Source: Epithemia pelagica (Eukaryota > Protista > Bacillariophyta). Taken from it: a stretch of DNA of 64,000 nucleotides. Shown piece by piece: positions 3,736 through 50,328 of this stretch (its first letter is position 1; each line of letters opens with the position of its first letter). Made by a program: the position numbers and the translations under genes. The stretch lies in assembly GCA_946965045.2 (NCBI GenBank), contig OX337229.1, positions 62,001 through 126,000 on the forward strand, written 5' to 3'. The notes below the pieces were generated by a model. That model was not told where the DNA came from, did no database searches, and worked only from the letters and a program-made list of their open reading frames with translations.

Positions 3736-3972
3736 TTATCCTTCATAAATTGGTTGAATGAGTGGATGCCATTGATGAAGCCAGGCGCAGAGCCAAAACA
3801 ACCACATGGCCGTGACGGCAATGGAGACGACAATGTTGCCAATGGCGGCATCGTCCTTGTTGAGCATGCCAAAGGCTCGACCGCCCATGACCATTCCAAT
3901 CAAAATGGCCGCGAATAATATGTACCCAATCGTACCCGTAATCAACACGGAGGGAATGCCCAACAACGACAT
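3736..3972 (-). CDS. ATP6V0E: V-type H+-ATPase subunit e (78 aa)
   Basis: Two hydrophobic helices and the C-terminal signature MWLFWLCAWLHQWHPLIQP of subunit e/Vma9. ATG at 3972. Confidence 0.93.
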   Translation of the reverse strand: MSLLGIPSVLITGTIGYILFAAILIGMVMGGRAFGMLNKDDAAIGNIVVSIAVTAMWLFWLCAWLHQWHPLIQPIYEG

Positions 3973-4936
3973 GATGATAAAACTTGGTGTGTGTAGGTGT
4001 GTGTAAAGAGATGTAGGTGTCTGTGGAGAATGAACCAACGGAATGGATCTAGGAAAGAGACTGGTGCTGCGAGAGGGTCTTGATGCAAGGCCACAAGGTT
4101 ATTTGCTTGGATATATAGCTTGTGCTGTTGTCTATCAAACGATCGACGACAATTGCCACAACCACAACGACTTCAAGAGACCAGAGGAGGTTGACTCGTT
4201 GACTCGTGTTGCTGCTGCTGGTGCTGTCGTGTTGTTGCTTCCCTCTTGATGGAGCCGGTCGGATTCGGGCACGCGCTCAAAGTTGGCGAGTGGTAGAGTC
4301 ATTGGAACGTCGGGCGGGCTTTTCGCCGTGACGGAAAGACCGCGATCCAAGATGTGTGGCAAGTGGCAAGGCGATTGTATCTCCGGTCGGATTGGCCACA
4401 CGGACGGTCGGTATCTTTTGGTGTCTCTTGTGTCTTGTGTTTGGCGTTCTCCAAAAAGATTTGGATTCTCGATCCGGGGAGCAGGCATACGAGAACAGAA
4501 AGATACTACCCCATTCCTACCACACATGCACGTGGTCTGGTAAGAACAAGAAGAGGGTACCGACTCTCCTCGTTTTGTTGTGTTCTGGACTTTTTTCTCG
4601 GAGAGAAGACAAAGAATCTTTTGGGTTTGGCGACCGGAGAGAGGTAGAGAAACAAGGAAGAAAGTCATTGTGGATCTAGTACAAAAGGGAATTGGATGAG
4701 AGCAACAAAACCAAGGACAGCGAACAAACTCCAGTGACAACAGTCCGTGCACAACCAAAACAAGAAGAGAAGAGTGCCAAACGAGAACAAGGAAACTATC
4801 GAATCATTATCATCCTCACCATCTTCATCATGTTGCAACTCCTCTCGACTCAACCCTATTACCTTACAACAACAAAAACAACAAGGTAAACCATCACAAA
4901 ACTAGCAACCGCAAGAACCCTGCTTGTTCCCAAATC

Positions 4937-7291
4937 ATGAGACATGGAGCCATTTTACGACGACGAGGAGGAATGGCTGTCGCCCACAGGATTCGGACAT
5001 GGTGGGACAGCGCTGGTTCGTCATTACCACTACCAACGCGGTCCGTGATTCGCTTCTCCACAACAGCAACAAGATCGACTAGACCAAGGGGCGGTCATCC
5101 ACCCGTCCTCCATGCATTGCCTTTTCCTTCTTGTTGTTGCTGTTTTCATTCCACATGGATCCGTCCCAAACAACTCCAACCAGACAGACCGTTCTGGTTC
5201 CCCTCCCAACACTCGCCGCCTAGGGACACAACTGTTGGTACCGAACCAACCGTGTCCAGATCCTCGGCCTCTTCGGCACCACCCTCTCCTCCGCTTTCTA
5301 CTTCTTCTTTGTCTTGGCTTCCTACGACGTCTGGTTTGTCGTCACGGTCAGAGCATGGTTCCTACATTTTGCAAGTCAAGGGAACCACGAGGCATCACTA
5401 TGCCGCGGCCGTGGGCATTGTCTTGCTTCAACGACCACCACAAACACAACAACAAGAACCATCCCAAGTCGTTCACACGAGGAATCCTTCTCCTCCCCCG
5501 GAAGAACCAGTGGTGGTCTTTGCCGGTCGCTACTTTTTGCCACGGTGGCGATCGGCCTTTGAAATTGAATATACCGCCATTTGCATGGGATTGGATCTGG
5601 CCCATCAGTACCTACTGCCGCAGCAACAACCACTCGAACAACAACAAGAACCACAACAAGAACCACGACGACCCATTGTCCTCGAGTTGCAATTGGATCA
5701 CGCCGTCATTCGTCAACAATTGCAAGGCACCTTGCCCATTAGCAAGACCAATCATCAGGAACGATTGACTTTCCTGTATTGGCAAATTATGGCCCAATCG
5801 CAAGCCTTTGTCTTTGACATTCAACCCATATCACCCGTCCAAAATCGACAAGCCGTTCATTTGGCCTGGACGGCCTTTGTCACGGGGCAATCGGCGTCCG
5901 TGTCCTTGCCAACCTCCACGAGTCGTGGATCCTCCTCCTCATCCCTGTCATCCTCCATTTGGGCCATTCAACAACGACCCTCCCAACGGTTCGTAGTACG
6001 ACAACCATTGCAGGGTCGGTCCCATCCCAATCCTCATCCTTGCGATTTGGAACTGGCGTTTGTCCCCTTGGAGGATCCCTATAATCGCCTCAAGAAACAC
6101 AACGAAGAAGAAGAAGAAGATGATGAGCAAGAGGAGAATGTGCAACACGAGGAGGAGTATCCCGAGCTACTGGACCATTCGTTGGAACCACCGGCGACAG
6201 AGCAAGACAGGAACCATGCGGGTTCGCCGGGAAACCAAGACCCAGATGCGCCTTGCTCGTCATCCTCCGCGTCATCGGTGCCACCTCCCAGCGCTATGGT
6301 TCCTCCTCGGGTCGCCCGTCCCTACAACGAACGAAATATCATGAGGATGATGAGTCCCATGGATCCTACACAAACCTATTTGTTGCAATGCGATGGTGGA
6401 TGTCGTGGTCGACCCACCTTTGTTTCGGGCGTCGGCATGGTCTTGTATCAACTCAATCACCAGGACGACGACGACAACAAGAAGAACCACCACCAGGATT
6501 CCTGGCACCAGAAACCGGAAATGGAAAACGAGTGGAACACGCACCTGGTAGAAGTCTGGTGTGGATTCAAATGCTTTCTTCCCAGTTCCGCCACACTCCA
6601 AACCTTTTCGTCGTCTCGTCACCGCCGCAATCGTCAGGCCAAGAACGAAACCAACAACCACAAGCAAAACAGCAGTCCGGTGCAAAACAACAACGACGAC
6701 CACCAGTACGACGAGGGACTCCGGAATGAGGCTGGTCGAATGAGTAACAATGTAGCCGAAATTTGGAGTTTGCTCTTGGGATTGGAGCAAGCACGACGTT
6801 TGGGCATTCGAAACTTACGGGTCCAAATGGATTGTGACACGGTCGTTCGCATCATTTACCAGGCAACGACCACAACCAACAAGGCGTCCAGTCCAGTCCC
6901 CACAACCGACAACAGCAATGATGACGACTCATTGTCATTATCGTCGTCCTTGTCCGTCAACGCGTTGCCCCTGGGTCCCTTTATTCGACAGGTACAAGAA
7001 TTGGTGGAGACGCATTTTGATGAGTTTGAAATTGAACACATTCGACGTCAGTACAATCGGCGGGCCGACTTTTTGGCCAATCATGCCATGGATTTTCAGT
7101 GCGACTATGGTGTTGATCCAGACATTGTGATATCTGGATCGTCCCCACAACATGCTTCGATACCGAAGAACCAACAAACAGAACCAGAGGACACTCTCCC
7201 GTATATGTACAAGGAGGAATGCGATTCAGAAGACAATGATGATGACGTGAATGAACTCCACCTTTCCTCCATGGCCGATCAACACTCCTAG
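4937..7291 (+). CDS. Ribonuclease HI-family protein with a degenerate N-terminal RNase H fold plus an intact archaeal-type RNase H domain
   Basis: The C-terminal domain has all four acidic residues (LQCDGGCRG, NNVAEIWSLLLGL, VQMDCD, HIRRQYNRRADFLANHAMD). The N-terminal domain has the same spacing with substitutions (LQVKG, AFEIEYTAICMGL, QLDH, QNRQAVHLA). Confidence 0.85.
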   Translation: MRHGAILRRRGGMAVAHRIRTWWDSAGSSLPLPTRSVIRFSTTATRSTRPRGGHPPVLHALPFPSCCCCFHSTWIRPKQLQPDRPFWFPSQHSPPRDTTVGTEPTVSRSSASSAPPSPPLSTSSLSWLPTTSGLSSRSEHGSYILQVKGTTRHHYAAAVGIVLLQRPPQTQQQEPSQVVHTRNPSPPPEEPVVVFAGRYFLPRWRSAFEIEYTAICMGLDLAHQYLLPQQQPLEQQQEPQQEPRRPIVLELQLDHAVIRQQLQGTLPISKTNHQERLTFLYWQIMAQSQAFVFDIQPISPVQNRQAVHLAWTAFVTGQSASVSLPTSTSRGSSSSSLSSSIWAIQQRPSQRFVVRQPLQGRSHPNPHPCDLELAFVPLEDPYNRLKKHNEEEEEDDEQEENVQHEEEYPELLDHSLEPPATEQDRNHAGSPGNQDPDAPCSSSSASSVPPPSAMVPPRVARPYNERNIMRMMSPMDPTQTYLLQCDGGCRGRPTFVSGVGMVLYQLNHQDDDDNKKNHHQDSWHQKPEMENEWNTHLVEVWCGFKCFLPSSATLQTFSSSRHRRNRQAKNETNNHKQNSSPVQNNNDDHQYDEGLRNEAGRMSNNVAEIWSLLLGLEQARRLGIRNLRVQMDCDTVVRIIYQATTTTNKASSPVPTTDNSNDDDSLSLSSSLSVNALPLGPFIRQVQELVETHFDEFEIEHIRRQYNRRADFLANHAMDFQCDYGVDPDIVISGSSPQHASIPKNQQTEPEDTLPYMYKEECDSEDNDDDVNELHLSSMADQHS

Positions 7292-7714: not shown

Positions 7715-7889
7715 GGAACTAGAAGCCAGATAGTCTCTGGTGCGTACAGCTCTTGGTGGAAAGCCCGCTCGCGACGTCAACGCGGCTGTACAATGAACGG
7801 GTGAGGCGACAGGACATCAATGGATGCCTGACAGGCACTATGGCACACCCCAGAGGCTAATCAGAGGAGCCCCCAAACTCGTAAAGGGT

Positions 7890-7976
7890 AGGCTAATCAA
7901 GAGGTAGCCCGAATCTCTAGGCTAATCAAGAGGTAGCCCGGATCTCTAGGCTAATCAAGAGGTAGCCCGAATCTCT
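7890..7976. repeat. 29-bp tandem repeat x3 (aggctaatcaagaggtagcccgaatctct); a fourth copy near 8109
   Basis: Read directly from the sequence. Confidence 0.95.
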
Positions 7977-8387
7977 AGGAGTACATACAATTTGAACGGT
8001 GGAGGCGACAGGACGTCAATGGACGCCTGTCATGCAACTATATGGCACACCCCACGCCGTATTGTATGTAACTCCTGAGGCAATCAGAGGAGCCTCTAAC
8101 TCGTTGCTGGCTAATCAAGAGGTAGCCCTAATCTCTATCTGGCACAGAGACCAAAGTCTCCGTGCCAGATACCTGGTAACACAAGGACAAGTCCTCATGC
8201 CACCAGGGTTTTGTGATAACACCGACAGCCGACACACCAACAAGGACCACCAACAAGGACCACCAACAAGGACGTCTCCGACAAGGACTCTAGCTAGACT
8301 CAGCTGATGTAGGAGTAGGAGTAAAATTTAGCAATCGGTAGAAACAGAAGAAGGGGTATTAGAGTGAGTAGGTTGAGTAGGAAAGAT

Positions 8388-9329
8388 TCATAACCGACAC
8401 GACTGTTCGCACGTACCACTAGCAACCGACAACCGACATGTTTTTTTCTGGGTTTTTTGGATTTTTTTGCTTTTTCTGGGTTTTTTGGATTTTTTTGCTT
8501 TTTCTGGTTTTTTTGGATTTTTTGGATTGTTTTCAACAGCACCACTACCCGTACCCGCGGACAAAAGACGAGCGGATCGTCGAACGTGCACCATTCGGCG
8601 TGCCTTTTTGGAGTAGGCAACAACAAGGATCCTGCCCAAACGCGGGGAGTCCTCGGGGCCGGAGGAACTCTCGATCACGCTTTGGCGGGCATTCTCGTCA
8701 ATGTGAGGCGAGGTATCTTTTTGGGTGGGGGTGGGGGGAGGAGGGGTGGCGACCATGGAAGGAGGGGTGGAGTTTCGAGGGGGTGAGTCGTGCCCCAAAG
8801 TGATCTCGTCGTCGTTGTCAGGGATGAGCGCAGGTTCAGGCTGATGACGGTCGACTGGAGGGGTCTCCTCTTCCTCGTCGTCCTCGAGATCGTCTGCGAG
8901 TGCGAGAGGAGGGAAGTCCAAGTCAGCGTCGAACTCGCAAGGCAGAACAGCAACATTGTCGACGTCGACCGCCTCCTCGCGATCGCGAATCTCCATCTCT
9001 CCAACTTCCTGCCGACCATTCTTGCAGTTCTTCGCAGCAAGCTTTGCTTCGGCAATGGCCAGCTGTTGCTGAAGCTGAGCTTTGTCGTGTCGAAGCTGTC
9101 GAAGCTCCGCATGTTCGTGTCGAAGCTCCACGTGTTCGCTACTTGTAGTACGACTTCTCTTGATGAAAATGACCCGAAACAGGTGTTGGACAATAAGTTT
9201 CGCCTCATCGAGGACATCAGCGACACCGTAACACAGTATGAGAGTCACAAAAGGAGCAACTAACAGAGCCCATTCGGAGCTGATCATCTTTTCGTAACAG
9301 TAATCACAATCACACATCATCATGGTCAA
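8388..9329 (-). CDS. Hypothetical protein: TM helix, coiled coil, acidic/Pro-rich linker, RRSARLLSA motif, Lys-rich tail
   Basis: 313-aa ORF. Its paralogue at 26679-27524 is also open, with in-frame indels in the shared part. Confidence 0.65.
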   Translation of the reverse strand: MTMMMCDCDYCYEKMISSEWALLVAPFVTLILCYGVADVLDEAKLIVQHLFRVIFIKRSRTTSSEHVELRHEHAELRQLRHDKAQLQQQLAIAEAKLAAKNCKNGRQEVGEMEIRDREEAVDVDNVAVLPCEFDADLDFPPLALADDLEDDEEEETPPVDRHQPEPALIPDNDDEITLGHDSPPRNSTPPSMVATPPPPTPTQKDTSPHIDENARQSVIESSSGPEDSPRLGRILVVAYSKKARRMVHVRRSARLLSAGTGSGAVENNPKNPKKPEKAKKSKKPRKSKKIQKTQKKTCRLSVASGTCEQSCRL

Positions 9330-9839
9330 TCGTATTTTTGGTCAATCGTATTTTGTTTTTGTGCGTGTTGGATTGTTGCGTGTTGTCGTTGTTGGCGTTT
9401 TGTGTTGTTTGGCGATCGGACCCTCGAGGTGCGAGGCAGCGGGGTCGGTTTATACGAGCACAACAATCAACCGTTCGAGGGCAGCAACACCCACCGTCGG
9501 GGCAATGTTGCACGTACCTCGAGGGTCGAGGGCAGCAACACAGCGCAACTACTCAACAATCAACCGTCGGGCGGTCCAATCACAACCAAGACGACGACGA
9601 CGACAAGAACAAAGAGCAAGTCGATGACGACGACACAACAACAAGATTCTAAATCATAATGAATAGCACACCTTCGTGCATGGGTTGGTTCTTCTTCTAT
9701 GCGACTACTACGACGGTTTGGTTGATACAACAATACAATACAAAACTACACCCCAATCTGTTTCGTTTTGATGTTTGCTGGTTTCTACCTAGTTTGGTTA
9801 ATGGGCCACCAAGGGAGCCGTTGCAGCTGTGGTGGGCAC

Positions 9840-10631: not shown

Positions 10632-11820
10632 CATGCACTTGGTCTGGTGAGAACAAGAAGAGGGCCATCTCTCATGCACTTGGTCATAGTTTTTGTATTT
10701 CTGGAGACTTTTTTGGAGAGACGAAGAACCTTTTGGTTTGGCGACAGGAGAGAGCGAAATTCAAACGAGAGTGCGAAATCCAAACGAGAGTGCTAGCTAG
10801 CCTGTGTGGATCTATGGGCAACCGAACAAGGAAACTATTGAATCATCTTCATCATCAAAATGTTGCGACTCCTCTCGACTCAACCCTATTATCATACAAC
10901 AACCAAAACAACAAGGTAAACCATTACCATACAAGCAACAAGAAGAACCGTTGCTTGTCCCACAATCAAGAGACATGGCGCCACTTTCGACGAGGAGGAG
11001 GAGTGGCTGTCACCCGCAGGATTCTGACATGGTGGGGCAGCAATGGATCGACACCACCAACAACAAAAATACGCCTCGACGACGAATGGCGGTACTAGTC
11101 CTGTTTCTGTGAGTCGGCCAGTTCTCTTATCAAAAAGAACAACCAGACCAAGGGGCGGCCACCAACAACCCATCCAGGCAAACACGCACCTTGTGGAAGT
11201 CTGTTGTGGATTCAAATGCTTTCTTCCCAATTCCGCCACCCTCCAAACCTTTTCGTCTTCTTGCCATCGCCACAATCGCCATGCAAAGACCGAAACCAAC
11301 AAGCGCCGCAGCACTAGCAGTCATGCGCAAAGCAACGACGGCGACAAGTACGGCGACGACAAGTACGACGAGGGACTACGAAATGAGGCTGGTTGAATGA
11401 GTAACAATGTGGCCGAAATTTGGAGCCATGGATTTCAATGCGACTATGGTGTCGATCCAGACATTGTGATATCGTCCTCGTCGTCGCCACATGCTACTAC
11501 ACCGAAAAACCAACCAAAAGAACCAGAGGACACTCCCCGGTATTTGTACAAGGAGGAATACGATCCAGACGAGAATGATGACGACATGAATGGCGACCAC
11601 CTCTTCCTGGCCGATCAACACTCCTAGAGGTACACTGGTAGACAGAGTTGTGTTCAAAACCAGAACGAAATGTTGTGGAACAATAATGTTGTACTCTCTA
11701 CTACTGCCGGATGATTCGCTTCGACCCACACTATTTCTTTCTCGTTGGCTGTAAGAAAACATCTGGGGACGGGGATTCTATCGGTTGCCCTATGGTGATC
11801 TCTTGTTGGAACTACCAAGT
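10632..11820 (+). pseudogene. Internally deleted copy of the RNase H gene with its 5' and 3' flanks
   Basis: Colinear with about 4525-7460 but missing about 5100-6535 and about 6771-7085. It has a TGA in the position of CGA just before MSNNVAE. Confidence 0.9.
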
Positions 11821-16952: not shown

Positions 16953-18420
16953 ACTGCTGGTAAATGATGACACTGCTGATTGTGGGTTCCGTGATTCCGC
17001 CCGATTCTCTCCAGAGTCTTGAGAGAATCCTCGGTGGATTCGCTGAACTTACAATCAGCGTTGCTTGCTACACTTGTCCAGAAATGGAAGCAGCCTTTTT
17101 TGGTTCGTCGCCTTATACGTTGGGACAACCAGGAACCACTGCTGCTGATGTAATGATGACACTGCTGATTGTGGGTTGAGTGATTCCACCCGATTCTCTC
17201 CAGAGTCTTGAGGAGAGACTCGGTGGATTCGCTGAACTTACAATCAGCGTTGCTTGCTACACTTGTCCAGAAATGGAAGCAGCCTTTTTTGGTTCGTCGC
17301 CTTATACGTTGGGACAACCAGGAACCACTGCTGCTGATGTAATGATGACACTGCTGATTGTGGGTTGAGTGATTCCACCCGATTCTCTCCAGAGTCTTGA
17401 GGAGAGACTCGGTGGATTCGCTGAACTTACAATCAGCGTTGCTTGCTACACTTGTCCAGAAATGGAAGCAGCCTTTTTTGGTTCGTCGCCTTATACGTTG
17501 GGACAACCAGGAACCACTGCTGCTGATGTAATGATGACACTGCTGATTGTGGGTTGAGTGATTCCACCCGATTCTCTCCAGAGTCTTGAGGAGAGACTCG
17601 GTGGATTCGCTGAACTTACAATCAGCGTTGCTTGCTACACTTGTCCAGAAATGGAAGCAGCCTTTTTTGGTTCGTCGCCTTATACGTTGGGACAACCAGG
17701 AACCACTGCTGCTGATGTAATGATGACACTGCTGATTGTGGGTTGAGTGATTCCACCCGATTCTCTCCAGAGTCTTGAGGAGAGACTCGGTGGATTCGCT
17801 GAACTTACAATCAGCGTTGCTTGCTACACTTGTCCAGAAATGGAAGCAGCCTTTTTTGGTTCGTCGCCTTATACGTTGGGACAACCAGGAACCACTGCTG
17901 CTGATGTAATGATGACACTGCTGATTGTGGGTTGAGTGATTCCACCCGATTCTCTCCAGAGTCTTGAGGAGAGACTCGGTGGATTCACTGAACTTACAAT
18001 CAGCGTTGCTTGCTACACTTGTCCAGAAATGGAAGCAGCCTTTTTTGGTTCGTCGCCTTATACGTTGGAACAACCAGGAACCACTGCTGCTGATGTAATG
18101 ATGACACTGCTGATTGTGGGTTGAGTGATTCCACCCGATTCTCTCCAGAGTCTTGAGGAGAGACTCGGTGGATTCACTGAACTTACAATCAGCGTTACTT
18201 GCGACACTTGTCCAGAAATGGAAGCAGCCTTTTTTGGTTCGTCGCCTCATATGTTGGGACAACAAGGAACCACTGCTGCTGGTGAAATGATAACACTGCT
18301 GATTGTGGGTTCCGTGATTCCACCCGATTCTCTCCAGAGTTTTGAGAGAATTGATAGATTCACTGAACCCACAATCAGCGTTGCTTGCGACACTCGCCCC
18401 GAATTGGAATCAGCTGCTTG
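16953..18420. repeat. 189-bp tandem array (about 7.7 units, 8 hairpin copies)
   Basis: Exact 189-bp period (gctgattgtggg at 16975, 17164 ... 18298). Inner copies are near-identical and terminal copies diverged. Confidence 0.97.
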
Positions 18421-25599: not shown

Positions 25600-25999
25600 G
25601 ATGGAGACAAATGACGATGAATGACGGTACGTACGCGAACCAACACAACACCCAAATGCCCGAAACACTTGAGGAGAGCCAACGGACCAGGCCCTCCGTC
25701 ACAATCGTACGCCAAAGAAATGGTACGGTCGATTCCATGGTCACGAGCGCAGGACCATGAGAGACCAAACGAGGTAGATTCCTTTCTTGTGTGTGTGTGT
25801 TGGGGAGAGCCACCCCGATCCGACAGACTGGATCCGGTGGAAGAAAAGAAGAAGAAGAAGAAGTTATGTAGATTCTTTTGTCCTTCATAACATTATTCAT
25901 TGTGGAACACGTACTGCGGAAAGTATGCTCCAACTTTTAGACTTTTTCTAGGCGTAGTAGGAGTAGTGTGTCGGCGCAAGTTCTTTTGGTTTTAATGTG

Positions 26000-26941
26000 G
26001 CTCTTGGTAAGAAGAGTGGGCATCTCTTCCGCAAGCCCGCTGGCGACGTCAACGCGGCCACAAATACAGCGGGTATTTTTTGTTGTTTAGGGAAGCGGAG
26101 GAATCAATGGATTCTCCAGGGGCAACTATGGCACTCTTCCCCAATGGCACAGAGACCGAAGTCTCCATGCCATACCTGGTGACACAAGGACAAAGTCCTC
26201 ATGCCACCAGGGTTTTGTGATGGCATAGGTGACACAAGGACAAAGTCCTCGTGCCACCAGGGTTTTGTAATGGCATAGGTGGCACAAGGACTCAGTCCTT
26301 GTGCCACCAAGGTTTTGTGAAATTGTGGAAGCCCGGAGGAATCAATGGATTCTCCAGGGGCAACTATGGCACTCTTCCTCAATGGCACAGAGACCAAAGT
26401 CTCCATGCCATACCTGGTGACACAAGGACAGAGTCCTCGTGCCACCAGGGTTTTGTGATAACACCGACAACCGACACACCAACAAGGACGTCTCCGATCT
26501 CCGACAAGGTCTCTAGCTAGACTCAGCTGATGTAGGAGTAGGAGTAGAATTTAAAACAATGTCGTTAGAAACAGAAGAAGTGGTAGAGTGAGTAGGGTGA
26601 GGAGGAAAGATTCATTACCGACACCACCGTGCGCACGTACCACTGGCAACCGACAACCGACTTGTTTCAACTGCACCACTAGATACCCCTACCCGCGGAC
26701 AAAAGACGAGCGGATCGTCGAACGTGCACCATTCGGCGTGCCTTTTTGGAGTAGGCAACAGTAAGGATCCTGCCCAAACGCGTGGAGTCCTCGGGGCCGG
26801 AGGAACTCTCGATCACGCTTTGGGAGGCATTCTCATCCATGTGAGGCAAGGTATCTTTTCGGGTGGGGGTGGGGAAAGGAGGGGTGGCGACCATGGAAGA
26901 AGGGGTAGAATTTCGAGGGGGTGAGTCGTGCCCCAAAGTGA

Positions 26942-27015
<74 letters not shown>

Positions 27016-27727
27016 GGGATGAGCGCGGGTTCAGGCTCAGGACGGTCGACTGGAACCAGAGGGGTCTCCTCGTCGTCCTCGAGATCGTCTGCGAGTGCGA
27101 GAGGAGGGAAGTCCAAGTCAGCGTCGAACTCGCAAGGCAGAACAGCAACAGTGTCGACGTCGACCGCCTCCTCGCGATCGCGAATCTCCATCTCTCCATC
27201 TTCCTGCCGACCATTCTTGCAGTTCTTCGCAGCAAGCTTTGCTTCGGCAATGGCCAGCTGTTGTTGAAGCTGAGCTTTGTCGTGTCGAAGCTGTCGAAGC
27301 TCCGCATGTTCGTGTCGAAGCTCCGCGTGTTCGCTACTTGTAGTACGACTTTTCTTGTTGAAAATGACCCGAAACAGGTGTTGGACGATAAGTTTCGCCT
27401 CATCGAGGACATCAGCGACACCGTAACACAGTATGAGAGTCACAAAAGGAGCAACTAACAGAGCCCATTCGGAGCTGATCATCTTTTCGTAACAGTAATC
27501 ACAATCACACATCATCATGGTCAATCGTATTTTTGGTCAATCGTATTTTGTTTTTGTGCGTGTTGGATTGTTGCGTGTTGTTGTTGTTGGCGTTTCGTGT
27601 TGTTTGGCGATCGGACCATGGAGATTGCGAGGCAGCGGGGTCGGTTTATACGAACGCGTCGGGGCAATGTTTGTTGAACGCACCTCGAGGGCCGATGGCA
27701 GCAACTACACAACAATCAACCGTCGGG
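26000..27727. repeat. Dispersed unit, copy 2 (see 7749-9571)
   Basis: Colinear similarity. Contains a 238-bp duplication with three 50-bp hairpin subunits. Confidence 0.9.
26679..27524 (-). CDS. Paralogue of 8388-9329 with a 23-Asp run, ending RRSARLLSAGRGI
   Basis: 281-aa ORF. (GTC)23 at 26946-27014. Confidence 0.65.
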
Positions 27728-35228: not shown

Positions 35229-36525
35229 TCCAGTATCGCACTTGCCACTCTGCTTTAGGAAGTAGGAAGAGCTTCAAAGGCCTTCCTCTCATTCGGAAGT
35301 GGGCGAATAAGACTGTTATCGACAAAAAAGATGGATGAAAGCCGCAGTAGCTTTCGTTTACCCAACTATAGAATTTCGACGATTACATTCGAACGGACTC
35401 CTTCTTTCGAGTACTGCGATCCTTCCATGCCATTCGATGCACTTACAAGAGCACTACGTCTAGAGTAGAACACTGAGTTATTTTCTGTCTTGTCCCAGTA
35501 CCATGTACCATCTGGCATCTGGCATCTGGCGTCCCCTTTAGATTAAGGTGATACCCTAAAGTTCGGATCTTCATCTCCAGCCTTCTAGATGGCTTCATAC
35601 ATTACTTATAATTCGCTGGTCGGCGTCGGCAAGTGTAACAAGTTTGGTGTCGAAAGATGTCCATGGTGTCTAACCCAAAAACGATGGTCAGAAAGTTCTG
35701 TTTCTGACGTGTGTGGTTGAACACATAAACAATCGCCATTGAAGGAGTAGCTTCACAACCCTACAAATGAGACTCAACTATGCGCACCGTGTGCTCTTTG
35801 CTAGAGCTAGTAGACGCAAAAAGCCCTATCGCGATGAAGAACGGTCCACGGCGCGGTGGGGCGAACGACGCAGATGGTAGTCCCGGGCGTCGCAAAACTC
35901 CACCATGTTTCTTCTGTGATGTTATTCATCGTCATTCATCTACCAATTCGCGATAAAACAATCCTATTCATAATAGATTATATCACTTTGGAAGCGACAG
36001 AAGACGTAGGCTACTGATATCGATGGCGTTTGAATATCCACTCCAGTGAGAAAGATGCCTCCAATGTTTCGCATGTCATATAGCAATAATATGGTTAAGA
36101 CAAACTACCCTCGCAAAGAGCTAGAAGAGCATGTCGCGGCTGTGTCAGAGGCAAAATGACTTGTGTTGATATGGAGCATGCTCATTTTAGCAGCCATATA
36201 CTACAATCAACACATTCGATTCATTCGTTACATTCACCGCTTGCTCAAGAAGACGCCATGATGTTGTTTTCCCACTCAATACGGATAACCACCATTGGCT
36301 GAGAAGCTGGAAGCATGCGAGCTGCTATCAGCAATCCGTTGTTGTGCCCTTGATTTTCTGCTACGCCTTGTTTCGAACCAAGACCGCGCCGTGTTGAGAG
36401 CTCTGGAAAGCCGTCCATGTTTTCTTCGGAATGCAGTGCCACAAGAAGTTCTGACGAATGAAGGACGTTCATTCTCATGACGTCTATGGAGTGGGTCCTT
36501 TACCCCAGTGGACTCGTCCTCTTTG

Positions 36526-36951
36526 CTATGGGCGGCATGTTGCCTCTTCTTTCGTCGGATGTACGCGTACTCTCGACGTTTCCCCACAAACCGTGGTCCC
36601 CAAGGCCCCTGCAAATCCGCCCACCACAGGACCTACCACTGGACCCAAGACGAAAAAGAAAATTTTGATTCCATGACAAGAAGGGGCTTGCGGACAAGAA
36701 TAGGAGGACAATGAAAGGTTCGATCGCTCCTCACCCAAAACATTGGTGGCATTCGACGGCCCATACTTGTTCTCGAAGTGCAAACGTCTATTCTCTTGAT
36801 TAGTGTATTGTTGCTCAATGGAATTCAAATGCGAGTCATCATCATCATCATTGTTGGTCTCTAACATCCATCTGTCGCTTTCAGAAGTCCTATCGATTGT
36901 TCTAGACATCTTCCAGTGCAAAGGATCAGTCCAGAATTTTGTAGGAGTCAT
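36526..36951 (-). CDS. Small hypothetical protein with glycine-zipper-like helix (copy A)
   Basis: VLGPVVGPVVGGFAGALG is homologous to the neighbouring gene. Confidence 0.45.
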   Translation of the reverse strand: MTPTKFWTDPLHWKMSRTIDRTSESDRWMLETNNDDDDDSHLNSIEQQYTNQENRRLHFENKYGPSNATNVLGEERSNLSLSSYSCPQAPSCHGIKIFFFVLGPVVGPVVGGFAGALGTTVCGETSRVRVHPTKEEATCRP

Positions 36952-37439
36952 GGGGTTGGGAATTGGGAACTCATTCGTGGAGTGCGCTCTTGGATAGATA
37001 CTACCTATCACTGAGCGTCATCCGGGACTTGGTAAAGAATAGAGTCAATCCACTGAGCCCCGACTCAATTTTCTTGTGCGACTGCGGGGGAGCAAGTGTC
37101 TTTCGACTTGCGAGTGATTGCAGGAAACACAGTCGCTCGCGGCTTAAAATTCAAGACCAAGAAGTGCACATGAGAACAGAGGTGCAAAGACCAATGCCTA
37201 CAAGAGAATAAATGAAAGTCGATTGCAATCAAGCCAAAGGCAGGTAGGAGAAGAGGGGCAACACAATTACCTAAAGCAATTATCATTGTCTAATGTAAAT
37301 CTGGCCATGTCAGTATCTGACGTAAATCTTGTCATTTAGAATACTTGGTTACACAATCTGTGGATCTTTCACAACGTACAGCCTTTCCAACGATACACAA
37401 CAAACTAACTGAGCTGCTGAAGCTTGTCTACTTTTGCGC

Positions 37440-37976
37440 TCAAAGAGCCGTTGCCTGATGAACTGGATACTCGGGCTCAGTCTGAACGTCATTGTCCTTG
37501 GTATCATTGTTCGTGTGGTTATTACCAGATGTCAATTCTTTCAAACGACGTCGTTCGCGATTCTTGTTGACCGCCTTGGCCCCAAAGGCTCCCGCCAAAC
37601 CGCCGACCACACCACCCACAGGTCCCAAGACGGCCAATCCAGCGACTCCACCCACGACACCGTAAGCCACGGTGCGTCGTTTACGGCGAATCTTCATATC
37701 CAACAGTTCCGGATATTGAGCATATTTGCAGCAAGTGCTGCTGCTACTGCTGCATCGATGAACGGGACGACCGTTCGCTGGAATGATCGTAGTTGTCGTG
37801 GTCGTCGTCGTCGTGGTTGGCTTCACTAGTTCTTCGGTCGAACTATGCGTGTTGGTCGCATTAGTGGTGGGGGGAGAAGTTGATCCCCCCACAACAATTT
37901 CGGGTTCCACGACAATCGAAGGGTCCGAGGATTGACGATGATCGTCAATCGAGAACTTGGAATGGTCGTATGTCAT
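37440..37976 (-). CDS. Glycine-zipper membrane protein (copy A)
   Basis: VAYGVVGGVAGLAVLGPVGGVVGGLAGAFGAKAV flanked by basic residues. Confidence 0.7.
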   Translation of the reverse strand: MTYDHSKFSIDDHRQSSDPSIVVEPEIVVGGSTSPPTTNATNTHSSTEELVKPTTTTTTTTTTIIPANGRPVHRCSSSSSTCCKYAQYPELLDMKIRRKRRTVAYGVVGGVAGLAVLGPVGGVVGGLAGAFGAKAVNKNRERRRLKELTSGNNHTNNDTKDNDVQTEPEYPVHQATAL

Positions 37977-38537
37977 GGTTTCTTTCTTCTTGTTGTTGTT
38001 GTTGACCTGAGAGCGAGTGCACCAGAGAGGCTGAATTACTTGTCTGTTGGTTGATTTGATAGCGGCCACAACAAGTACAAGAAGAGCGTATTATGAGACA
38101 GAGCAATGAAAAATCCTTGAGTCGTTGCCGATGACGGCAACGAAAGATCCAAGATTTTCATTCCCACCGAGCCAAGTCGCTTTTTGTCACCAAGCCTTCC
38201 ATGGATTTCAACATGGTTCCTAGTCCTTCTTTCGAATGAACCCGAGAATCCAACGCATCACTTGGAACCTAAGACACAGAAGATTCGATTGTCCAGAGTA
38301 ACTCGCTGCGGCTGGACACCTAGCTGTCGTCCACGACCGCATCTCCCCGCTGACGGACAAGATCGATAAAGGACAAACAAGGGGAGATGTACCTCTCTCG
38401 CGATATGCTATGGGGAAGGTATAGAAAAGGTGAAAATACACTGCCTGACAAAATTGAACTTTGTATCGCGAATCTCATGCCAATGGCTCTGTCTGCTATA
38501 TATTCTGGTACGTCGTGGTAAACAGCAATCAAACAAG

Positions 38538-38819
38538 ATGAATCTTGCGGCGGCAGCAAAAGAACTAGTTGATTTGGAAAGAAAAGTCCCAGTCCTTTGC
38601 GGTTCTTCGACTTGCATGGCTCGCATTGAAGACTCGTCTTTGTGGAGCAGATCCGCCCTCCGACAGTGCCTTCCCTCACAGGTTTGGTATGACTACATGA
38701 AGATGGAAAGCAGGCGTGGCGTGAACACGGACTTTCGGAGGATATATCATGCTTTTCTACGATATTGGGCCGATATTCATGGCACTACCAGCCAACCACC
38801 CATAGATATGAGTAGCTAG
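38538..38819 (+). CDS. Small hypothetical protein (copy A)
   Basis: 93-aa ORF from MNLAAAAKELVDLERK with helical character only. Confidence 0.35.
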   Translation: MNLAAAAKELVDLERKVPVLCGSSTCMARIEDSSLWSRSALRQCLPSQVWYDYMKMESRRGVNTDFRRIYHAFLRYWADIHGTTSQPPIDMSS

Positions 38820-39330
38820 CAGCTACCTAGAAGCGGTGATTTCCCAGAAGCCCACGTGTTGTTGTAGAGCGAGGGCGATCGGTTTCTAACGAGACCGTGG
38901 GACCAAGCGACAAGTCGTTCGGCAAGTAAGACCAACCATTTGCGCTCCAGATGCAGCAAAAGGACGAACTCGATCGATCGATCGGATTAGGAGTACTCCA
39001 AAGATATGTGTAGCTAGCAGCTTCCTAGAAGCGGTGATTTCCCAGAAGCCCACGTGTTGTTGTAGAGCGAGGGTGATCGGTTTCTAACGAAACCATGGGA
39101 CCAAGCGACAAGTCATTCGGCAAGTAAGACCAACCATTTGCGCTCCAGATGCAGCAAAAGGACGAACGTTTGTGCTCGTTCAATTCGAGTAGGAGTACTA
39201 CCTAGATGCGGTGATTTCCCAAAAGCTCACGTGTTGTTGTAGAGCGTTTCTAACGAAACCATGAGAGCAAGCGACAAGTCGTTTGGCAAGTAAGACCATC
39301 ATTTGCTCTCTCTGACGATCTCGATTGGAG
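38804..39330. repeat. 198-bp tandem array (2 units plus a degenerate one)
   Basis: agatatg at 38804 and 39002. Confidence 0.92.
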
Positions 39331-39591
39331 TAGGAGTAGTATGCTAGAGGTGCTAGACCACATAGCTGGCCGCATGTAGTACTGACCTACCCATGAAATG
39401 ACCTCCCTCTACAGATTGACTCTATAGGACTGCGTATGACTCTGCGCGTACAATCTCTTGTATTGACGGAGGGGATGCTGTTTTTCACTTTTTGACACCG
39501 ATCTTGTCCATCTTTCTTCATTCTTCACTGGCCAAAAGGTAAGACTACGGTATACGGTAGCCGACAGTGGTGAAACTCTCCAGCGACCTAT

Positions 39592-44863: not shown

Positions 44864-46403
44864 CTTGAGGAGCCAACAACCCACAAAAGAGCAAGACGAT
44901 GGTGGTGATTGGACTTGTTGTTGTTGTTGTTTTTGTATGTGTGTCTGGGGGGAATGTCAACCAGAGCAGATTACTATCAATGGCGACAAACACAGACAAA
45001 CAAACACAAGTCTCGGAATACGGAAAAAGCGTCGTCTCGAAATCGGCCTCTCTCTTGTCGTGGAATCTACAATCTCTCCCTGTGATTTATTTTTGTGGGA
45101 GGAGGAATCCGTACAAACTACTAGTACTTGGCGGGGCCTCTTTGGAACTCGGTCAAGTAGGAAGAGCTTCAAAGGCCTTCCTCTCATTCGGAAGTGTGCG
45201 AATAAGACTGTTATCGACAAAACAGATGGATGAAGGCCGCAGTAGCTTTCGTTTACCCAACTATATCGAATTTCGACGATTACATTCGAACGGACTCCTT
45301 CTTTCGAGTACTGCGATCCTTCCATGCCATTCAATGCACTTACAAGAGCACTAGAGTACAACACTGTGTTATTTTCTGTCTTGTCCCAGTACCATGTACC
45401 ATCTGGCATCTGACGTCCCCTTTAGATTAAGGTGATACCCTAAAGTTCGGATCTTCATCTCCAGCCTTCTATATGGCTTCATACATTACTTATACTTTGC
45501 TGGTCGGCAAGTGTAACAAGTTTGGTGTCGAAAGATGTCCATGGTGTCTAACCCAAAAACGATGGTCAGAAAGTTCTGTTTCTGACGTGTGTGGTTGAAC
45601 ACATAAACAATCGCCATTGAAGGAGTAGCTTCACAACCCTACAAATGAGACTCAACTATGCGCACCGTGTGCTCTTTGCTAGAGCTAGTAGACGCAAAAA
45701 GCCCTATCGCGATGAAGAACGGTCCACGGCGCGGTGGGGCGAACGACGCAGATGGTAGTCCCGGGCGTCGCAAAACTCCACCATGTTTCTTCTGTGATGT
45801 TATTCATCGTCATTCATCTACCAATTCGCGATAAAACAATCCTATTCATAATAGATTATATCACTTTGGAAGCGACAGAAGACGTAGGCTACTGATATCG
45901 ATGGCGTTTGAATATCCACTCCAGTGAGAAAGATGCCTCCAATGTTTCGCATGTCATATAGCAATAATATGGTTAAGACAAACTACCCTCGCAAAGAGCT
46001 AGAAGAGCATGTCGCGGCTGTGTCAGAGGCAAAATGACTTGTGTTGATATGGAGCATGCTCATTTTAGCAGCCATATACTACAATCAACACATTCGATTC
46101 ATTCGTTACATTCACCGCTTGCTCAAGAAGACGCCATGATGTTGTTTTCCCACTCAATACGGATAACCACCATTGGCTGAGAAGCTGGAAGCATGCGAGC
46201 TGCTATCAGCAATCCGTTGTTGTGCCCTTGATTTTCTGCTACGCCTTGTTTCGAACCAAGACCGCGCCGTGTTGAGAGCTCTGGAAAGCCGTCCATGTTT
46301 TCTTCGGAATGCAGTGCCACAAGAAGTTCTGACGAATGAAGGACGTTCATTCTCATGACGTCTATGGAGTGGGTCCTTTACCCCAGTGGACTCGTCCTCT
46401 TTG

Positions 46404-46829
46404 CTATGGGCGGCATGTTGCCTCTTCTTTCGTCGGATGTACGCGTACTCTCGACGTTTCCCCACAAACCGTGGTCCCCAAGGCCCCTGCAAATCCGCCC
46501 ACCACAGGACCTACCACTGGACCCAAGACGAAAAAGAAAATTTTGATTCCATGACAAGAAGGGGCTTGCGGACAAGAATAGGAGGACAATGAAAGGTTCG
46601 ATCGCTCCTCACCCAAAACATTGGTGGCATTCGACGGCCCATACTTGTTCTCGAAGTGCAAACGTCTATTCTCTTGATTAGTGTATTGTTGCTCAATGGA
46701 ATTCAAATGCGAGTCATCATCATCATCATTGTTGGTCTCTAACATCCATCTGTCGCTTTCAGAAGTCCTATCGATTGTTCTAGACATCTTCCAGTGCAAA
46801 GGATCAGTCCAGAATTTTGTAGGAGTCAT
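46404..46829 (-). CDS. Small glycine-zipper-like hypothetical protein (copy B)
   Basis: Translation identical to 36526-36951. Confidence 0.45.
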   Translation of the reverse strand: MTPTKFWTDPLHWKMSRTIDRTSESDRWMLETNNDDDDDSHLNSIEQQYTNQENRRLHFENKYGPSNATNVLGEERSNLSLSSYSCPQAPSCHGIKIFFFVLGPVVGPVVGGFAGALGTTVCGETSRVRVHPTKEEATCRP

Positions 46830-47317
46830 GGGGTTGGGAATTGGGAACTCATTCGTGGAGTGCGCTCTTGGATAGATACTACCTATCACTGAGCGTCATC
46901 CGGGACTTGGTAAAGAATAGAGTCAATCCACTGAGCCCCGACTCAATTTTCTTGTGCGACTGCGGGGGAGCAAGTGTCTTTCGACTTGCGAGTGATTGCA
47001 GGAAACACAGTCGCTCGCGGCTTAAAATTCAAGACCAAGAAGTGCACATGAGAACAGAGGTGCAAAGACCAATGCCTACAAGAGAATAAATGAAAGTCGA
47101 TTGCAATCAAGCCAAAGGCAGGTAGGAGAAGAGGGGCAACACAATTACCTAAAGCAATTATCATTGTCTAATGTAAATCTGGCCATGTCAGTATCTGACG
47201 TAAATCTTGTCATTTAGAATACTTGGTTACACAATCTGTGGATCTTTCACAACGTACAGCCTTTCCAACGATACACAACAAACTAACTGAGCTGCTGAAG
47301 CTTGTCTACTTTTGCGC

Positions 47318-47854
47318 TCAAAGAGCCGTTGCCTGATGAACTGGATACTCGGGCTCAGTCTGAACGTCATTGTCCTTGGTATCATTGTTCGTGTGGTTAT
47401 TACCAGATGTCAATTCTTTCAAACGACGTCGTTCGCGATTCTTGTTGACCGCCTTGGCCCCAAAGGCTCCCGCCAAACCGCCGACCACACCACCCACAGG
47501 TCCCAAGACGGCCAATCCAGCGACTCCACCCACGACACCGTAAGCCACGGTGCGTCGTTTACGGCGAATCTTCATATCCAACAGTTCCGGATATTGAGCA
47601 TATTTGCAGCAAGTGCTGCTGCTACTGCTGCATCGATGAACGGGACGACCGTTCGCTGGAATGATCGTAGTTGTCGTGGTCGTCGTCGTCGTGGTTGGCT
47701 TCACTAGTTCTTCGGTCGAACTATGCGTGTTGGTCGCATTAGTGGTGGGGGGAGAAGTTGATCCCCCCACAACAATTTCGGGTTCCACGACAATCGAAGG
47801 GTCCGAGGATTGACGATGATCGTCAATCGAGAACTTGGAATGGTCGTATGTCAT
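47318..47854 (-). CDS. Glycine-zipper membrane protein (copy B)
   Basis: Translation identical to 37440-37976. Confidence 0.7.
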   Translation of the reverse strand: MTYDHSKFSIDDHRQSSDPSIVVEPEIVVGGSTSPPTTNATNTHSSTEELVKPTTTTTTTTTTIIPANGRPVHRCSSSSSTCCKYAQYPELLDMKIRRKRRTVAYGVVGGVAGLAVLGPVGGVVGGLAGAFGAKAVNKNRERRRLKELTSGNNHTNNDTKDNDVQTEPEYPVHQATAL

Positions 47855-48415
47855 GGTTTCTTTCTTCTTGTTGTTGTTGTTGACCTGAGAGCGAGTGCAC
47901 CAGAGAGGCTGAATTACTTGTCTGTTGGTTGATTTGATAGCGGCCACAACAAGTACAAGAAGAGCGTATTATGAGACAGAGCAATGAAAAATCCTTGAGT
48001 CGTTGCCGATGACGGCAACGAAAGATCCAAGATTTTCATTCCCACCGAGCCAAGTCGCTTTTTGTCACCAAGCCTTCCATGGATTTCAACATGGTTCCTA
48101 GTCCTTCTTTCGAATGAACCCGAGAATCCAACGCATCACTTGGAACCTAAGACACAGAAGATTCGATTGTCCAGAGTAACTCGCTGCGGCTGGACACCTA
48201 GCTGTCGTCCACGACCGCATCTCCCCGCTGACGGACAAGATCGATAAAGGACAAACAAGGGGAGATGTACCTCTCTCGCGATATGCTATGGGGAAGGTAT
48301 AGAAAAGGTGAAAATACACTGCCTGACAAAATTGAACTTTGTATCGCGAATCTCATGCCAATGGCTCTGTCTGCTATATATTCTGGTACGTCGTGGTAAA
48401 CAGCAATCAAACAAG

Positions 48416-48697
48416 ATGAATCTTGCGGCGGCAGCAAAAGAACTAGTTGATTTGGAAAGAAAAGTCCCAGTCCTTTGCGGTTCTTCGACTTGCATGGCTC
48501 GCATTGAAGACTCGTCTTTGTGGAGCAGATCCGCCCTCCGACAGTGCCTTCCCTCACAGGTTTGGTATGACTACATGAAGATGGAAAGCAGGCGTGGCGT
48601 GAACACGGACTTTCGGAGGATATATCATGCTTTTCTACGATATTGGGCCGATATTCATGGCACTACCAGCCAACCACCCATAGATATGAGTAGCTAG
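48416..48697 (+). CDS. Small hypothetical protein (copy B)
   Basis: Translation identical to 38538-38819. Confidence 0.35.
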   Translation: MNLAAAAKELVDLERKVPVLCGSSTCMARIEDSSLWSRSALRQCLPSQVWYDYMKMESRRGVNTDFRRIYHAFLRYWADIHGTTSQPPIDMSS

Positions 48698-49410
48698 CAG
48701 CTACCTAGAAGCGGTGATTTCCCAGAAGCCCACGTGTTGTTGTAGAGCGAGGGCGATCGGTTTCTAACGAGACCGTGGGACCAAGCGACAAGTCGTTCGG
48801 CAAGTAAGACCAACCATTTGCGCTCCAGATGCAGCAAAAGGACGAACTCGATCGATCGATCGGATTAGGAGTACTCCAAAGATATGTGTAGCTAGCAGCT
48901 TCCTAGAAGCGGTGATTTCCCAGAAGCCCACGTGTTGTTGTAGAGCGAGGGTGATCGGTTTCTAACGAAACCATGGGACCAAGCGACAAGTCATTCGGCA
49001 AGTAAGACCAACCATTTGCGCTCCAGATGCAGCAAAAGGACGAACTCGATCGATCGATCGGATTAGGAGTACTCCAAAGATATGTGTAGCTAGCAGCTTC
49101 CTAGAAGCGGTGATTTCCCAGAAGCCCACGTGTTGTTGTAGAGCGAGGGCGATCGGTTTCTAACGAAACCATGGGACCAAGCGACAAGTCATTCGGCAAG
49201 TAAGACCAACCATTTGCGCTCTATGCAGCAAAAGGACGAACGTTTGTGCTCGTTCAATTCGAGTAGGAGTACTAACTAGATGCGGTGATTTCCCAAAAGC
49301 TCACGTGTTGTTGTAGAGCGTTTCTAACGAAACCATGAGAGCAAGCGACAAGTCGTTTGGCAAGTAAGACCATCATTTTGCTCTCTCTGACGAACTCGAT
49401 TGGAGTAGGA
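48682..49410. repeat. 198-bp tandem array (3 units plus a degenerate one)
   Basis: agatatg at 48682, 48880 and 49078. Confidence 0.92.
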
Positions 49411-50328
49411 GTAGTATGCTAGAGGTGCTAGACCACATAGCTGGCCGCATGTAGTACTGACCACCCCATGAAATGACCTCCCTCTACAGATTGACTCTAT
49501 AGGAAACTGCGTATGACTCTGCGCGTACAATCTCTTGTATTGACGGAGGGGATGCTGTTTTTCACTTTTTGACACCGATCTTGTCCATCTTTCTTCATTC
49601 TTCACTGCCGACAGTGGGGAAACTCTCCAGCGACCTATCGGCACTGCTCCTTTTGATATACAAACTCGGAGTTTTACTATTGTCATAGATTGCGCCCACC
49701 TCTTGATGCAGTACTTTTCTTTAACGATTCTCTCACCCAACCGATTTTAGTTGAAATAAATATACGATTACTGATTGGGCAAGCCCCTGCAATCCTGCGT
49801 ATTTTCTACTTCAATTGGTGTAGACCACGAGGTACTCGTATTCGTTACTCTTTTTACTCGTAGCCCTGCCTCTTGTCCTTGGGCGAACAGTTGATTCTCC
49901 CTATCAGACTATTAGGATAAGATGATGATGTCGACAATGACAAAGCTGACATATCGTTGGGCGCAATGAAGAACTTATTGACTGGGATATGTCAATGATG
50001 CGATAGGTTGTGATGTTTGATTGCTACTACATCTTAGCGCGTTGGCGCTTTACTATGGAGATGGGATGCTTCAAACCGAGGACATGAGAGAAGCAGGGCT
50101 AGCTACCCAACAAATATCAACTTCGGCATCCATGGGGGATGGTTTATTGCCCTATGAGGTACTCGTAGTTTTGTAGGTCCCTACCAAATCCAATGTACCG
50201 TTTGGTTGGCGTAATTTCCATGATATTCATTCTGGTCCCAGTTGACAAAGAGAGACGTTCACCGAGTTGAAGATCCCTCTTATCTGAGCTTTTTGTCAAT
50301 TGCAGTCTGCCTACTCGATTTCGTATTC

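Follow-up and report, generated by a model that had tools for sequence, protein, structure and literature searches.

A modular stem-loop cassette downstream of an orphan gene family near chromosome ends in the diatom Epithemia pelagica: a putative structured element of the sense transcript

Introduction

Four described systems come close to the element reported here, a cassette of short, covarying stem-loops that trails an orphan gene family in the diatom Epithemia pelagica and that we analysed starting from a 64,000-nucleotide stretch of DNA, hereafter the window (positions 62001–126000 of contig 2; the genome comprises 60.5 Mb in 23 contigs). The five iron-responsive elements (IREs) in the 3' untranslated region (UTR) of transferrin-receptor mRNA form an array of multiple short, bulged stem-loops in which loop and bulge are invariant and the stem is free; the array provides repeated protein docking that controls mRNA stability. 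Bacterial repetitive extragenic palindromes (REPs) and bacterial interspersed mosaic elements (BIMEs) are clusters of 30–40-nt imperfect palindromes, variable in copy number, that lie directly downstream of genes, are cotranscribed with them and shield the upstream mRNA from 3'–5' exonucleases. In trypanosomes, the 16-mer and 8-mer motifs in the 3' UTR of variant surface glycoprotein (VSG) genes provide a near-identical 3' element in a large, fast-diverging family near chromosome ends; these motifs are required for mRNA stability and mark the downstream limit of gene conversion. Finally, integron attC sites place an imperfect hairpin behind a gene, with conserved extrahelical bases, variable stems and one functional strand.

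By analogy, the diatom cassette would work most like the transferrin-receptor IRE array or the bacterial REP clusters, with the VSG motifs as a parallel at the level of the gene family. It belongs to none of these systems, because their defining features were tested and found to be absent. An IRE is capped by the hexaloop CAGUGN and carries its bulged C in the 5' arm, with five pairs between loop and bulge. The comparable hairpin of the cassette (type III, below) is capped by the tetraloop CAUU; its bulged base, a U or C, sits in the 3' arm, and four pairs separate it from the loop. The Rfam search returned no IRE match. Unlike the IRE array, the cassette mixes three or more hairpin designs, its copy number varies among paralogues and its role is putative. 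REPs and BIMEs are bacterial, occur at hundreds of unrelated intergenic sites and are mobilised by a dedicated HUH transposase; the cassette, in contrast, occurs with a single eukaryotic gene family only, and the analysis revealed no enzyme associated with it. What the VSG genes share are short linear motifs rather than covarying hairpins, in an unrelated organism. The attC sites act as single-stranded DNA (ssDNA) with a tyrosine recombinase in bacteria, whereas the cassette has no integrase or discrete border and its loops are typical of RNA.

The search against Rfam (release 15) that had been suggested when the hairpins were first noticed gave 0 matches in the 64-kb window at gathering thresholds; at permissive E-values, it gave generic hairpin matches only, at 17–36 bits against thresholds of 42–200 bits. 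ARAGORN found no tRNA, and full-text literature searches yielded no description of such an element in diatoms.

Stem-loop cassettes at two loci

An earlier reading of the window, made from sequence alone, had flagged two stretches of recurring hairpins. Both sit between convergent genes, and in each the conserved partner is an open reading frame (ORF) on the minus strand. Locus A comprises the hairpins at 7808–8207 and orphan-gene paralogue A; locus B comprises those at 26097–26449 and paralogue B. In a pairwise comparison, the two loci are alignable from the hairpins across the entire gene. The sense strand of the gene is the minus strand at both, and all features listed below lie on it.

Locus A:
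7726..7740, minus strand: distal mini-hairpin IV, plus strand CCAGA-TAGTC-TCTGG; paralogues have ATAGA...TCTAT or CTAGAC...GTCTAG
7745..7791, minus strand: distal stem V, outer arms GTACAGC...GCTGTAC enclosing a conserved GACGTCAACGCGGC core
7808..7833, minus strand: type III copy 1, 11-bp stem with one-base bulge; sense loop CAUU (plus AATG)
7837..7846, minus strand: unpaired conserved motif X, plus strand ACTATGGCAC, found beside nearly every type III
7889..7979, minus strand: S module, 29-nt tandem unit in 3.1 copies, with a 5-bp GGCTA/TAGCC stem per unit
7969..8075, minus strand: long stem of ~14 bp plus bulge, GGAGTACATACAAT / ATTGTATGTAACTCC, around type III copy 2
8007..8032, minus strand: type III copy 2, inner stem CGTC/GACG, a compensated variant of CATC/GATG
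8137..8170, minus strand: type II, 15-bp stem, sense UUUG loop, one G·U pair
8172..8207, minus strand: type I, 17-bp stem, four sense G·U pairs
8208..8440, minus strand: cassette–gene spacer with ACAAAAC linker, END motif and variable-length microsatellites, GU-rich in the sense strand
8388..9329, minus strand: orphan gene paralogue A, 313 amino acids, with membrane anchor, coiled coil, acidic linker and C-terminal RRSARL motif

Locus B:
25996..26062, minus strand: distal stem V, TGTGGC...GCCACA, with an additional internal hairpin
26097..26120, minus strand: type III subtype A copy 1, GGAG-G-AATC / GATT-CTCC, outer stem shortened at the array edge
26144..26173, minus strand: type II copy 1, 13-bp stem, tandem U·G/G·U, sense cUUCGg tetraloop
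26175..26308, minus strand: three type I copies in tandem with a 50-nt period (26175–26211, 26228–26258 and 26278–26308)
26333..26358, minus strand: type III subtype A copy 2, full-length stem
26382..26449, minus strand: terminal type II (26382–26411) plus type I (26413–26449), the gene-proximal module
26679..27524, minus strand: orphan gene paralogue B, 281 amino acids, C-terminal end ...RRSARLLSAGRGI

The hairpins noticed in the window are all present where they had been placed: type I at 26178, 26228, 26278 (perfect), 26416 and 8175; type II at 26145, 26383 and 8140; and type III at 7808, 8007, 26097 and 26335. The type I assignment at 8175 stands as to position, but this copy reads GGTAAC, with one A·C more than the consensus. 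The type III copy at 7808..7833 has one U·U mismatch in its lower stem, and the copy number of the S module differs among paralogues. A genome-wide search with either cassette as query identified 38 non-redundant loci, containing 58 copies of type I and 54 (flank-based orientation) or 57 (locus orientation) of type II. A single genome is the source of all evidence given here, and its paralogues are related, so that shuffle controls overstate significance.

The copy at 26278–26308 is the sole perfect type I palindrome among the 58. Two wobble positions and the loop set it apart from its neighbours all at once, as if from one hairpin-templated conversion.

Compensatory change in three hairpin designs

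The three designs differ in stem and loop. Type I has a G·U-rich stem (CCTGG...CCAGG) and a U-rich triloop, type II a stem with tandem U·G/G·U pairs and a UUCG or UUUG tetraloop, and type III a CAUU loop on a stem whose one-base bulge is fixed. The stems proposed earlier do exist, but they are longer than claimed, at 17 bp in type I, 13–15 bp in type II and 11 bp plus the bulge in type III. In type II, the sense strand reads GAC-UUCG-GUC in 46 of 57 copies, with UUUG in 11 of 57, and the antisense equivalent is CGAA. The cUUCGg loop is an RNA-specific hyperstable tetraloop, and 5'-UG-3'/3'-GU-5' is the favoured tandem wobble. The type II sense-strand sequence agrees with the UNCG definition, having a C(UNCG)G loop and a C–G closing pair, and both the cUUCGg loop and the 5'-UG-3'/3'-GU-5' tandem are confined to the sense strand.

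Types I and II are homologous, with two compensated pairs between them and a third at the base of type II (A–U, C–G or U–A). The compensatory exchange of GAGA/TCTC for AGGA/TCCT, first noticed between hairpins of the window, is real. Over both types, 97.2% of cells are paired and three of the 12 pairs have changed on both sides.

Compensation extends further in type III. Its bulge position and loop are invariant in 69 of 69 copies, and across its 13 distinct sequences 95.8% of cells are standard pairs and seven of the 11 pairs have changed on both sides; none of 500 shuffles reached the observed score, and slid controls were at most 50% paired. There are two subtypes, alike in loop, closing pairs, bulge position and flanking motif X but different at approximately 14 of 22 stem bases. 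A third variant carries one further compensated pair (CATC/GATG to CGTC/GACG), and the inner-stem variants CATC/GATG, CGTC/GACG and AATC/GATT described from the window are borne out. Such a combination of fixed bulge and loop with a free stem is typical of hairpins read by proteins. The distal stems covary as well, with GTACAGC/GCTGTAC against the TGTGGC/GCCACA of the other subfamily in stem V and CCAGA/TCTGG against ATAGA/TCTAT in hairpin IV.

Strand bias and folding

The imperfections of the type I and type II stems are strongly polarised. Read on the plus strand, type I cells comprise 819 Watson–Crick, 154 A·C and 5 G·T, and type II cells 592 Watson–Crick, 105 A·C and 2 G·T. When mismatch states were tallied per stem position on the sense strand over all copies, 15 were G·U and seven A·C. 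Those present in three or more copies were all G·U (12 against 0), whereas those present in two or fewer copies were mixed (three G·U, seven A·C), a contrast with a Fisher p of 0.0007, or 0.003 with each of the two states that types I and II have in common entered a single time. Distinct sequences alone contribute 71 G·U cells and 5 A·C cells. The sequence-only reading had every mismatch in the type I and II hairpins of the window as A·C on the plus strand; across all copies this holds for the common states, 12 of 12 of which are sense G·U, but not for the rare ones, which are mixed and include a few plus-strand G·T. Nor do many copies show the even split between G·T and A·C that had been named in advance as evidence against structure, as the common states are all sense G·U.

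The flanks of the same paralogues show no such polarity. Transitions are balanced in the coding sequence (64 versus 49) and in the 3' flank (34 versus 40), and these symmetric spectra rule out a general mutational strand bias, such as sense C-to-T, whether linked to transcription or otherwise strand-specific, as the explanation. A replication-direction explanation does not fit either, because the genes run in mixed directions, some towards and some away from the contig ends. Rare variants, presumably recent, arise both ways, and only those that keep the sense wobble became common.

Predicted folds agree with this polarity. Against shuffles, the locus B cassette folds at −199.9 kcal/mol on the minus strand (z = −12.8) and −169.6 kcal/mol on the plus strand (z = −7.4), and the locus A cassette at −207.8 kcal/mol (z = −5.3) and −191.2 kcal/mol (z = −4.6), respectively. 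The sense strand is more stable than the antisense strand in 30 of 30 loci, by 16–54 kcal/mol (mean 33 kcal/mol).

Organisation and genomic distribution of the cassette

Wherever a gene is present (28 loci show full coding homology), the cassette lies 3' of it in one fixed orientation, and three to approximately 12 short stem-loops trail each gene. The first hairpin begins 55–368 nt after the stop codon (median ~236 nt), and the final type III ends at a median of ~570 nt from it. On the sense strand, the stop codon is followed by a GU-rich spacer with microsatellites of variable length, then by one or more units composed of the linker ACAAAAC, type I and type II, and then by motif X with type III; one subfamily adds tandem 29-nt S units and a long stem enclosing a second type III, and the distal stems IV and V come last. 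The cassette is modular, and copy number and module order vary between paralogues. Some cassette fragments are without a gene, lost by rearrangement, and fragments truncated at either end exist.

Outside these loci the hairpins do not occur. An exact-pattern scan of the genome recovered 50 type I and 46 type II sites, all inside loci of the family. A covariance model of type III was searched against the genome, with 150 of the first-look candidates scored and significance set at E ≤ 3e-4; it gave 70 significant matches, all in family loci and all on the sense strand of the gene. Pattern scans and covariance model together thus found no type I, II or III sites elsewhere in the 60.5 Mb, and no further significant type III sites that would point to a wider regulon emerged among the 150 candidates scored.

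The gene-proximal, terminal II–I module retains ~95% identity among paralogues at coding identities of 78% and 97% alike and is more conserved than the adjoining spacer, a pattern that could reflect purifying selection or concerted evolution. The 3' borders of homology are ragged, with several end points, and homology continues at least 200 nt upstream of the gene on the 5' side. The copy ends examined have no poly(A) tail and no constant terminus, and no consistent poly(A) signal was found.

The spacer itself can expand: in one family copy from a second assembly of the same organism (L061, positions 3960–4200), it has grown to ~240 nt of (TTGGTTTG)n(TTGGTGTG)n. At locus A, a conserved, CA-rich leader with CAACAA repeats (9330–9560, sense strand) precedes the gene, and the spacer (8208–8440) is GU-rich. 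Pairing between the two was considered and rejected: predicted energies of −34 to −96 kcal/mol correspond to z-scores of −2.4 to +0.4, and shuffled spacers pair about equally well with the leader, so the complementarity is compositional and not sequence-specific.

The orphan gene family

Recognisable in the protein are a hydrophobic anchor at the N terminus, a coiled coil, an acidic or poly-Asp linker and, at the C terminus, an RRSARLLSAG motif; no Pfam family matches it above threshold. The motif resembles RRSARLSA, the nucleosome-binding core of HMGN proteins. A protein search of the genome found approximately 32 paralogues, coinciding with the cassette loci; 27 of the genes are intact, with a ratio of nonsynonymous to synonymous substitution rates (dN/dS) of ~0.75 and a synonymous divergence of ~0.11.

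Almost all loci lie within ~0.7 Mb of contig ends: at the right ends of contigs 1 and 4, at the left end of contig 2 and near the left ends of contigs 3, 8, 11, 13 and 17. Two contig 3 loci lie ~0.43 Mb from the right end of that contig, and one internal cassette fragment occurs on contig 13 at 1.3 Mb. In a search of 5.8 billion proteins, the family appeared in one ENA assembly only (22 matches), which derives from the same organism; four of six loci fetched from it are 100% identical to this genome. Exact patterns of types I and II had no match in metagenome contigs, and we know of no relative of the family in any other organism.

Two repeats alter the coding sequences in the window. A 28-nt tandem unit in 2.9 copies at 8443–8523 occurs in locus A but not in locus B and has an A-rich sense strand; the frame of paralogue A continues through it, and its translation gives that protein a Lys/Pro-rich tail. 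Paralogue B contains a perfect (TCG)24 microsatellite (26944–27015) that encodes its poly-Asp run, the length of which varies among paralogues.

Other features of the window

The convergent neighbour of locus A, though not of locus B, is a plus-strand ORF of 784 amino acids (4937–7291) that encodes an RVT_3 (RNase H-like) domain (E = 5e-21); parts of this ORF are repeated near 10800–11600. A 189-bp tandem array of seven copies at 16963–18396 is unrelated in sequence to the cassette. Positions 35260–39530 and 45155–49607 form a duplication of ~4 kb, 94–100% identical and spaced by ~9.9 kb, that contains a 198-bp tandem repeat.

Discussion

We propose, with moderate confidence and from comparison of sequences, that the cassette is a structured cis-acting element in the sense transcript of a species-specific orphan family near chromosome ends, because the strand that pairs is the strand transcribed with the gene. 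That pairing is selected in the single-stranded minus, or gene-sense, strand had been suggested from the window alone, and the compensatory changes, the fixed bulge and loop, the sense-G·U common states and the symmetric flanks support it. Among the three functions suggested at that time, an undescribed 3' structured RNA element fits best. The cassette would occupy either a long 3' UTR or a termination zone past the poly(A) site, between convergent genes, and its hairpins would fold in RNA read through from the gene. There, one or more RNA-binding proteins could dock on them repeatedly, or they could obstruct exonucleases or the polymerase; either way, they would govern how stable the family's transcripts are, how they are translated, where they localise or how they terminate. 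The array would expand and contract through unequal crossing-over between units.

Several observations weigh against this proposal. The independent events behind it are few, amounting to approximately ten common wobble states plus two or three subtypes of hairpin in young, related paralogues, and the sole other assembly carrying the family comes from the same organism, so the data are those of one genome. UUUG substitutes for UUCG in 11 of 57 type II copies, and seven type III copies bear a U·U mismatch in the lower stem. Concerted evolution alone, without selection, could give the flat 95% identity of the terminal module; G·T wobbles also stabilise ssDNA hairpins, so that strand bias by itself is not proof of RNA; and the mature mRNA may not include the cassette. 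Constraint on the orphan gene itself is weak (dN/dS ~0.75).

Three other explanations deserve comparison with the transcript element. The cassette could instead be a neutral palindromic minisatellite, which we consider unlikely. On this view, imperfect inverted repeats form an unstable array that travels with the gene when segments are duplicated between chromosome ends and that is homogenised by unequal crossing-over and gene conversion; the arms match through hairpin-templated repair (template switching) and not through function, and the strand bias goes back to a few old founder mismatches multiplied by array expansion. The variable copy number and module order, the gene-less truncated fragments, the richness of the region in other tandem repeats and the apparent one-step conversion of the 26278 copy to a perfect palindrome are in keeping with such an array; so is the identity of the terminal module, which does not track coding divergence, as concerted evolution predicts, and about ten independent common wobble states lie behind the hundreds of biased cells. 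Templated correction should, however, remove bulges and wobbles, yet only one of 58 type I copies is perfect and the type III bulge occupies the same place in 69 of 69 copies despite the differences in their stems. The type III subtypes, moreover, agree in architecture, loop and flank and differ in the sequence of the stem. Neutrality also predicts something other than rare states that are mixed (three G·U, seven A·C) beside common states that stand at 12 to 0, and the flanks are without mutational asymmetry.

We regard it as quite improbable that the hairpins act on the sense (non-template) DNA strand as ssDNA, serving recombination, gene conversion or transposition of the gene unit in the manner of attC or of HUH-type hairpins (Helitron, REP-associated transposase), or stabilising R-loops that pause the polymerase. 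A strand-specific imperfect structure with a fixed extrahelical base and variable stems is indeed what attC shows, multiple copies of the unit are scattered over at least eight contig-end regions, and the genome holds approximately 20 Helitron Rep genes. But those Rep genes are scattered in chromosome interiors, with none near the family loci, and the hairpins occur neither apart from the family nor at Helitron copies. The 3' ends of homology vary, the 5' side continues for at least 200 nt and neither a poly(A) tail nor a constant terminus is present; the genes face either way with respect to the contig end, and the UUCG loop and tandem UG/GU pairs are, on established knowledge, typical of RNA. 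The signal of a mobile unit, one of the functions first suggested, therefore goes unsupported on three counts: the hairpins never stand away from the family, the borders are ragged and the Helitron Rep genes lie elsewhere. Another of those suggestions, a small-RNA precursor, would have sense hairpins or duplexes between units cut by a Dicer-like enzyme to silence or co-regulate the ~32 paralogues. Tandem type I units can form a mutual duplex of ~31 bp, the multicopy family near chromosome ends would offer a target, and generic microRNA-precursor models give weak, far sub-threshold matches on the tandem type I stretch; those scores, however, are 20–36 bits against Rfam thresholds of 90–200 bits, the I–I tandem needed for the long duplex exists in three loci only, and single stems of 11–17 bp are too short for Dicer-type processing (~21 bp or more). 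The invariant loop and bulge also suit protein recognition better than dicing, and we judge this origin highly improbable.

Other identities were considered and rejected. Against a miniature inverted-repeat transposable element or another small mobile hairpin, all pattern sites and significant model sites fall in family loci, in one orientation to the gene. A Helitron terminus (a hairpin 10–12 nt before CTRR) disagrees with the multiple homology end points, the location elsewhere of the 20 Rep matches and the absence of the hairpins from the rest of the genome. Retrocopying by a long interspersed nuclear element is contradicted by the missing poly(A) tail, the ragged 3' ends, the conserved upstream sequence of at least 200 nt and the truncations at either end. 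A coding repeat is excluded by the 50-nt and 76-nt periods, which break the frame, and by cassette ORFs that lie on opposite strands in loci A and B; a tRNA-like element or short interspersed nuclear element is excluded by the finding of no tRNA. A consensus scan for a plus-strand, bacterial-type terminator (hairpin plus TTTT) catches the perfect copy, yet the plus-strand stems bear A·C mismatches and the genome is eukaryotic.

As a transcript element, the cassette is best filed, on its sequence features, as a new lineage-specific family among the structured stem-loop elements behind genes, with a putative function. Post-transcriptional control in diatoms is little known, and Rfam holds no structured 3' element of this type. 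The approximately 30 paralogues, with three to 12 stem-loops each and with compensated and uncompensated variants among them, constitute a natural series in which the number and integrity of hairpins can be set against transcript level, 3'-end position and stability, and, should there be a binding protein, the invariant bulged CAUU hairpin offers a ready bait. Comparing common with rare wobble states can, in addition, expose the functional strand of such an element within one genome. Were the cassette untranscribed, a strand-specific ssDNA structure in a eukaryotic gene family near chromosome ends would be unusual too. A further reading, tentative and in our view doubtful, is that the cassette represents an undescribed class of modular, copy-number-variable structured RNA, in which a dedicated factor reads the CAUU loop and bulge and the number of stem-loops tunes or coordinates expression of the family. 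If so, the stem-loop count could coordinate the members such that few are active at once, and the cassette would correspond, in a diatom, to the 3' control elements of parasite variant gene families.

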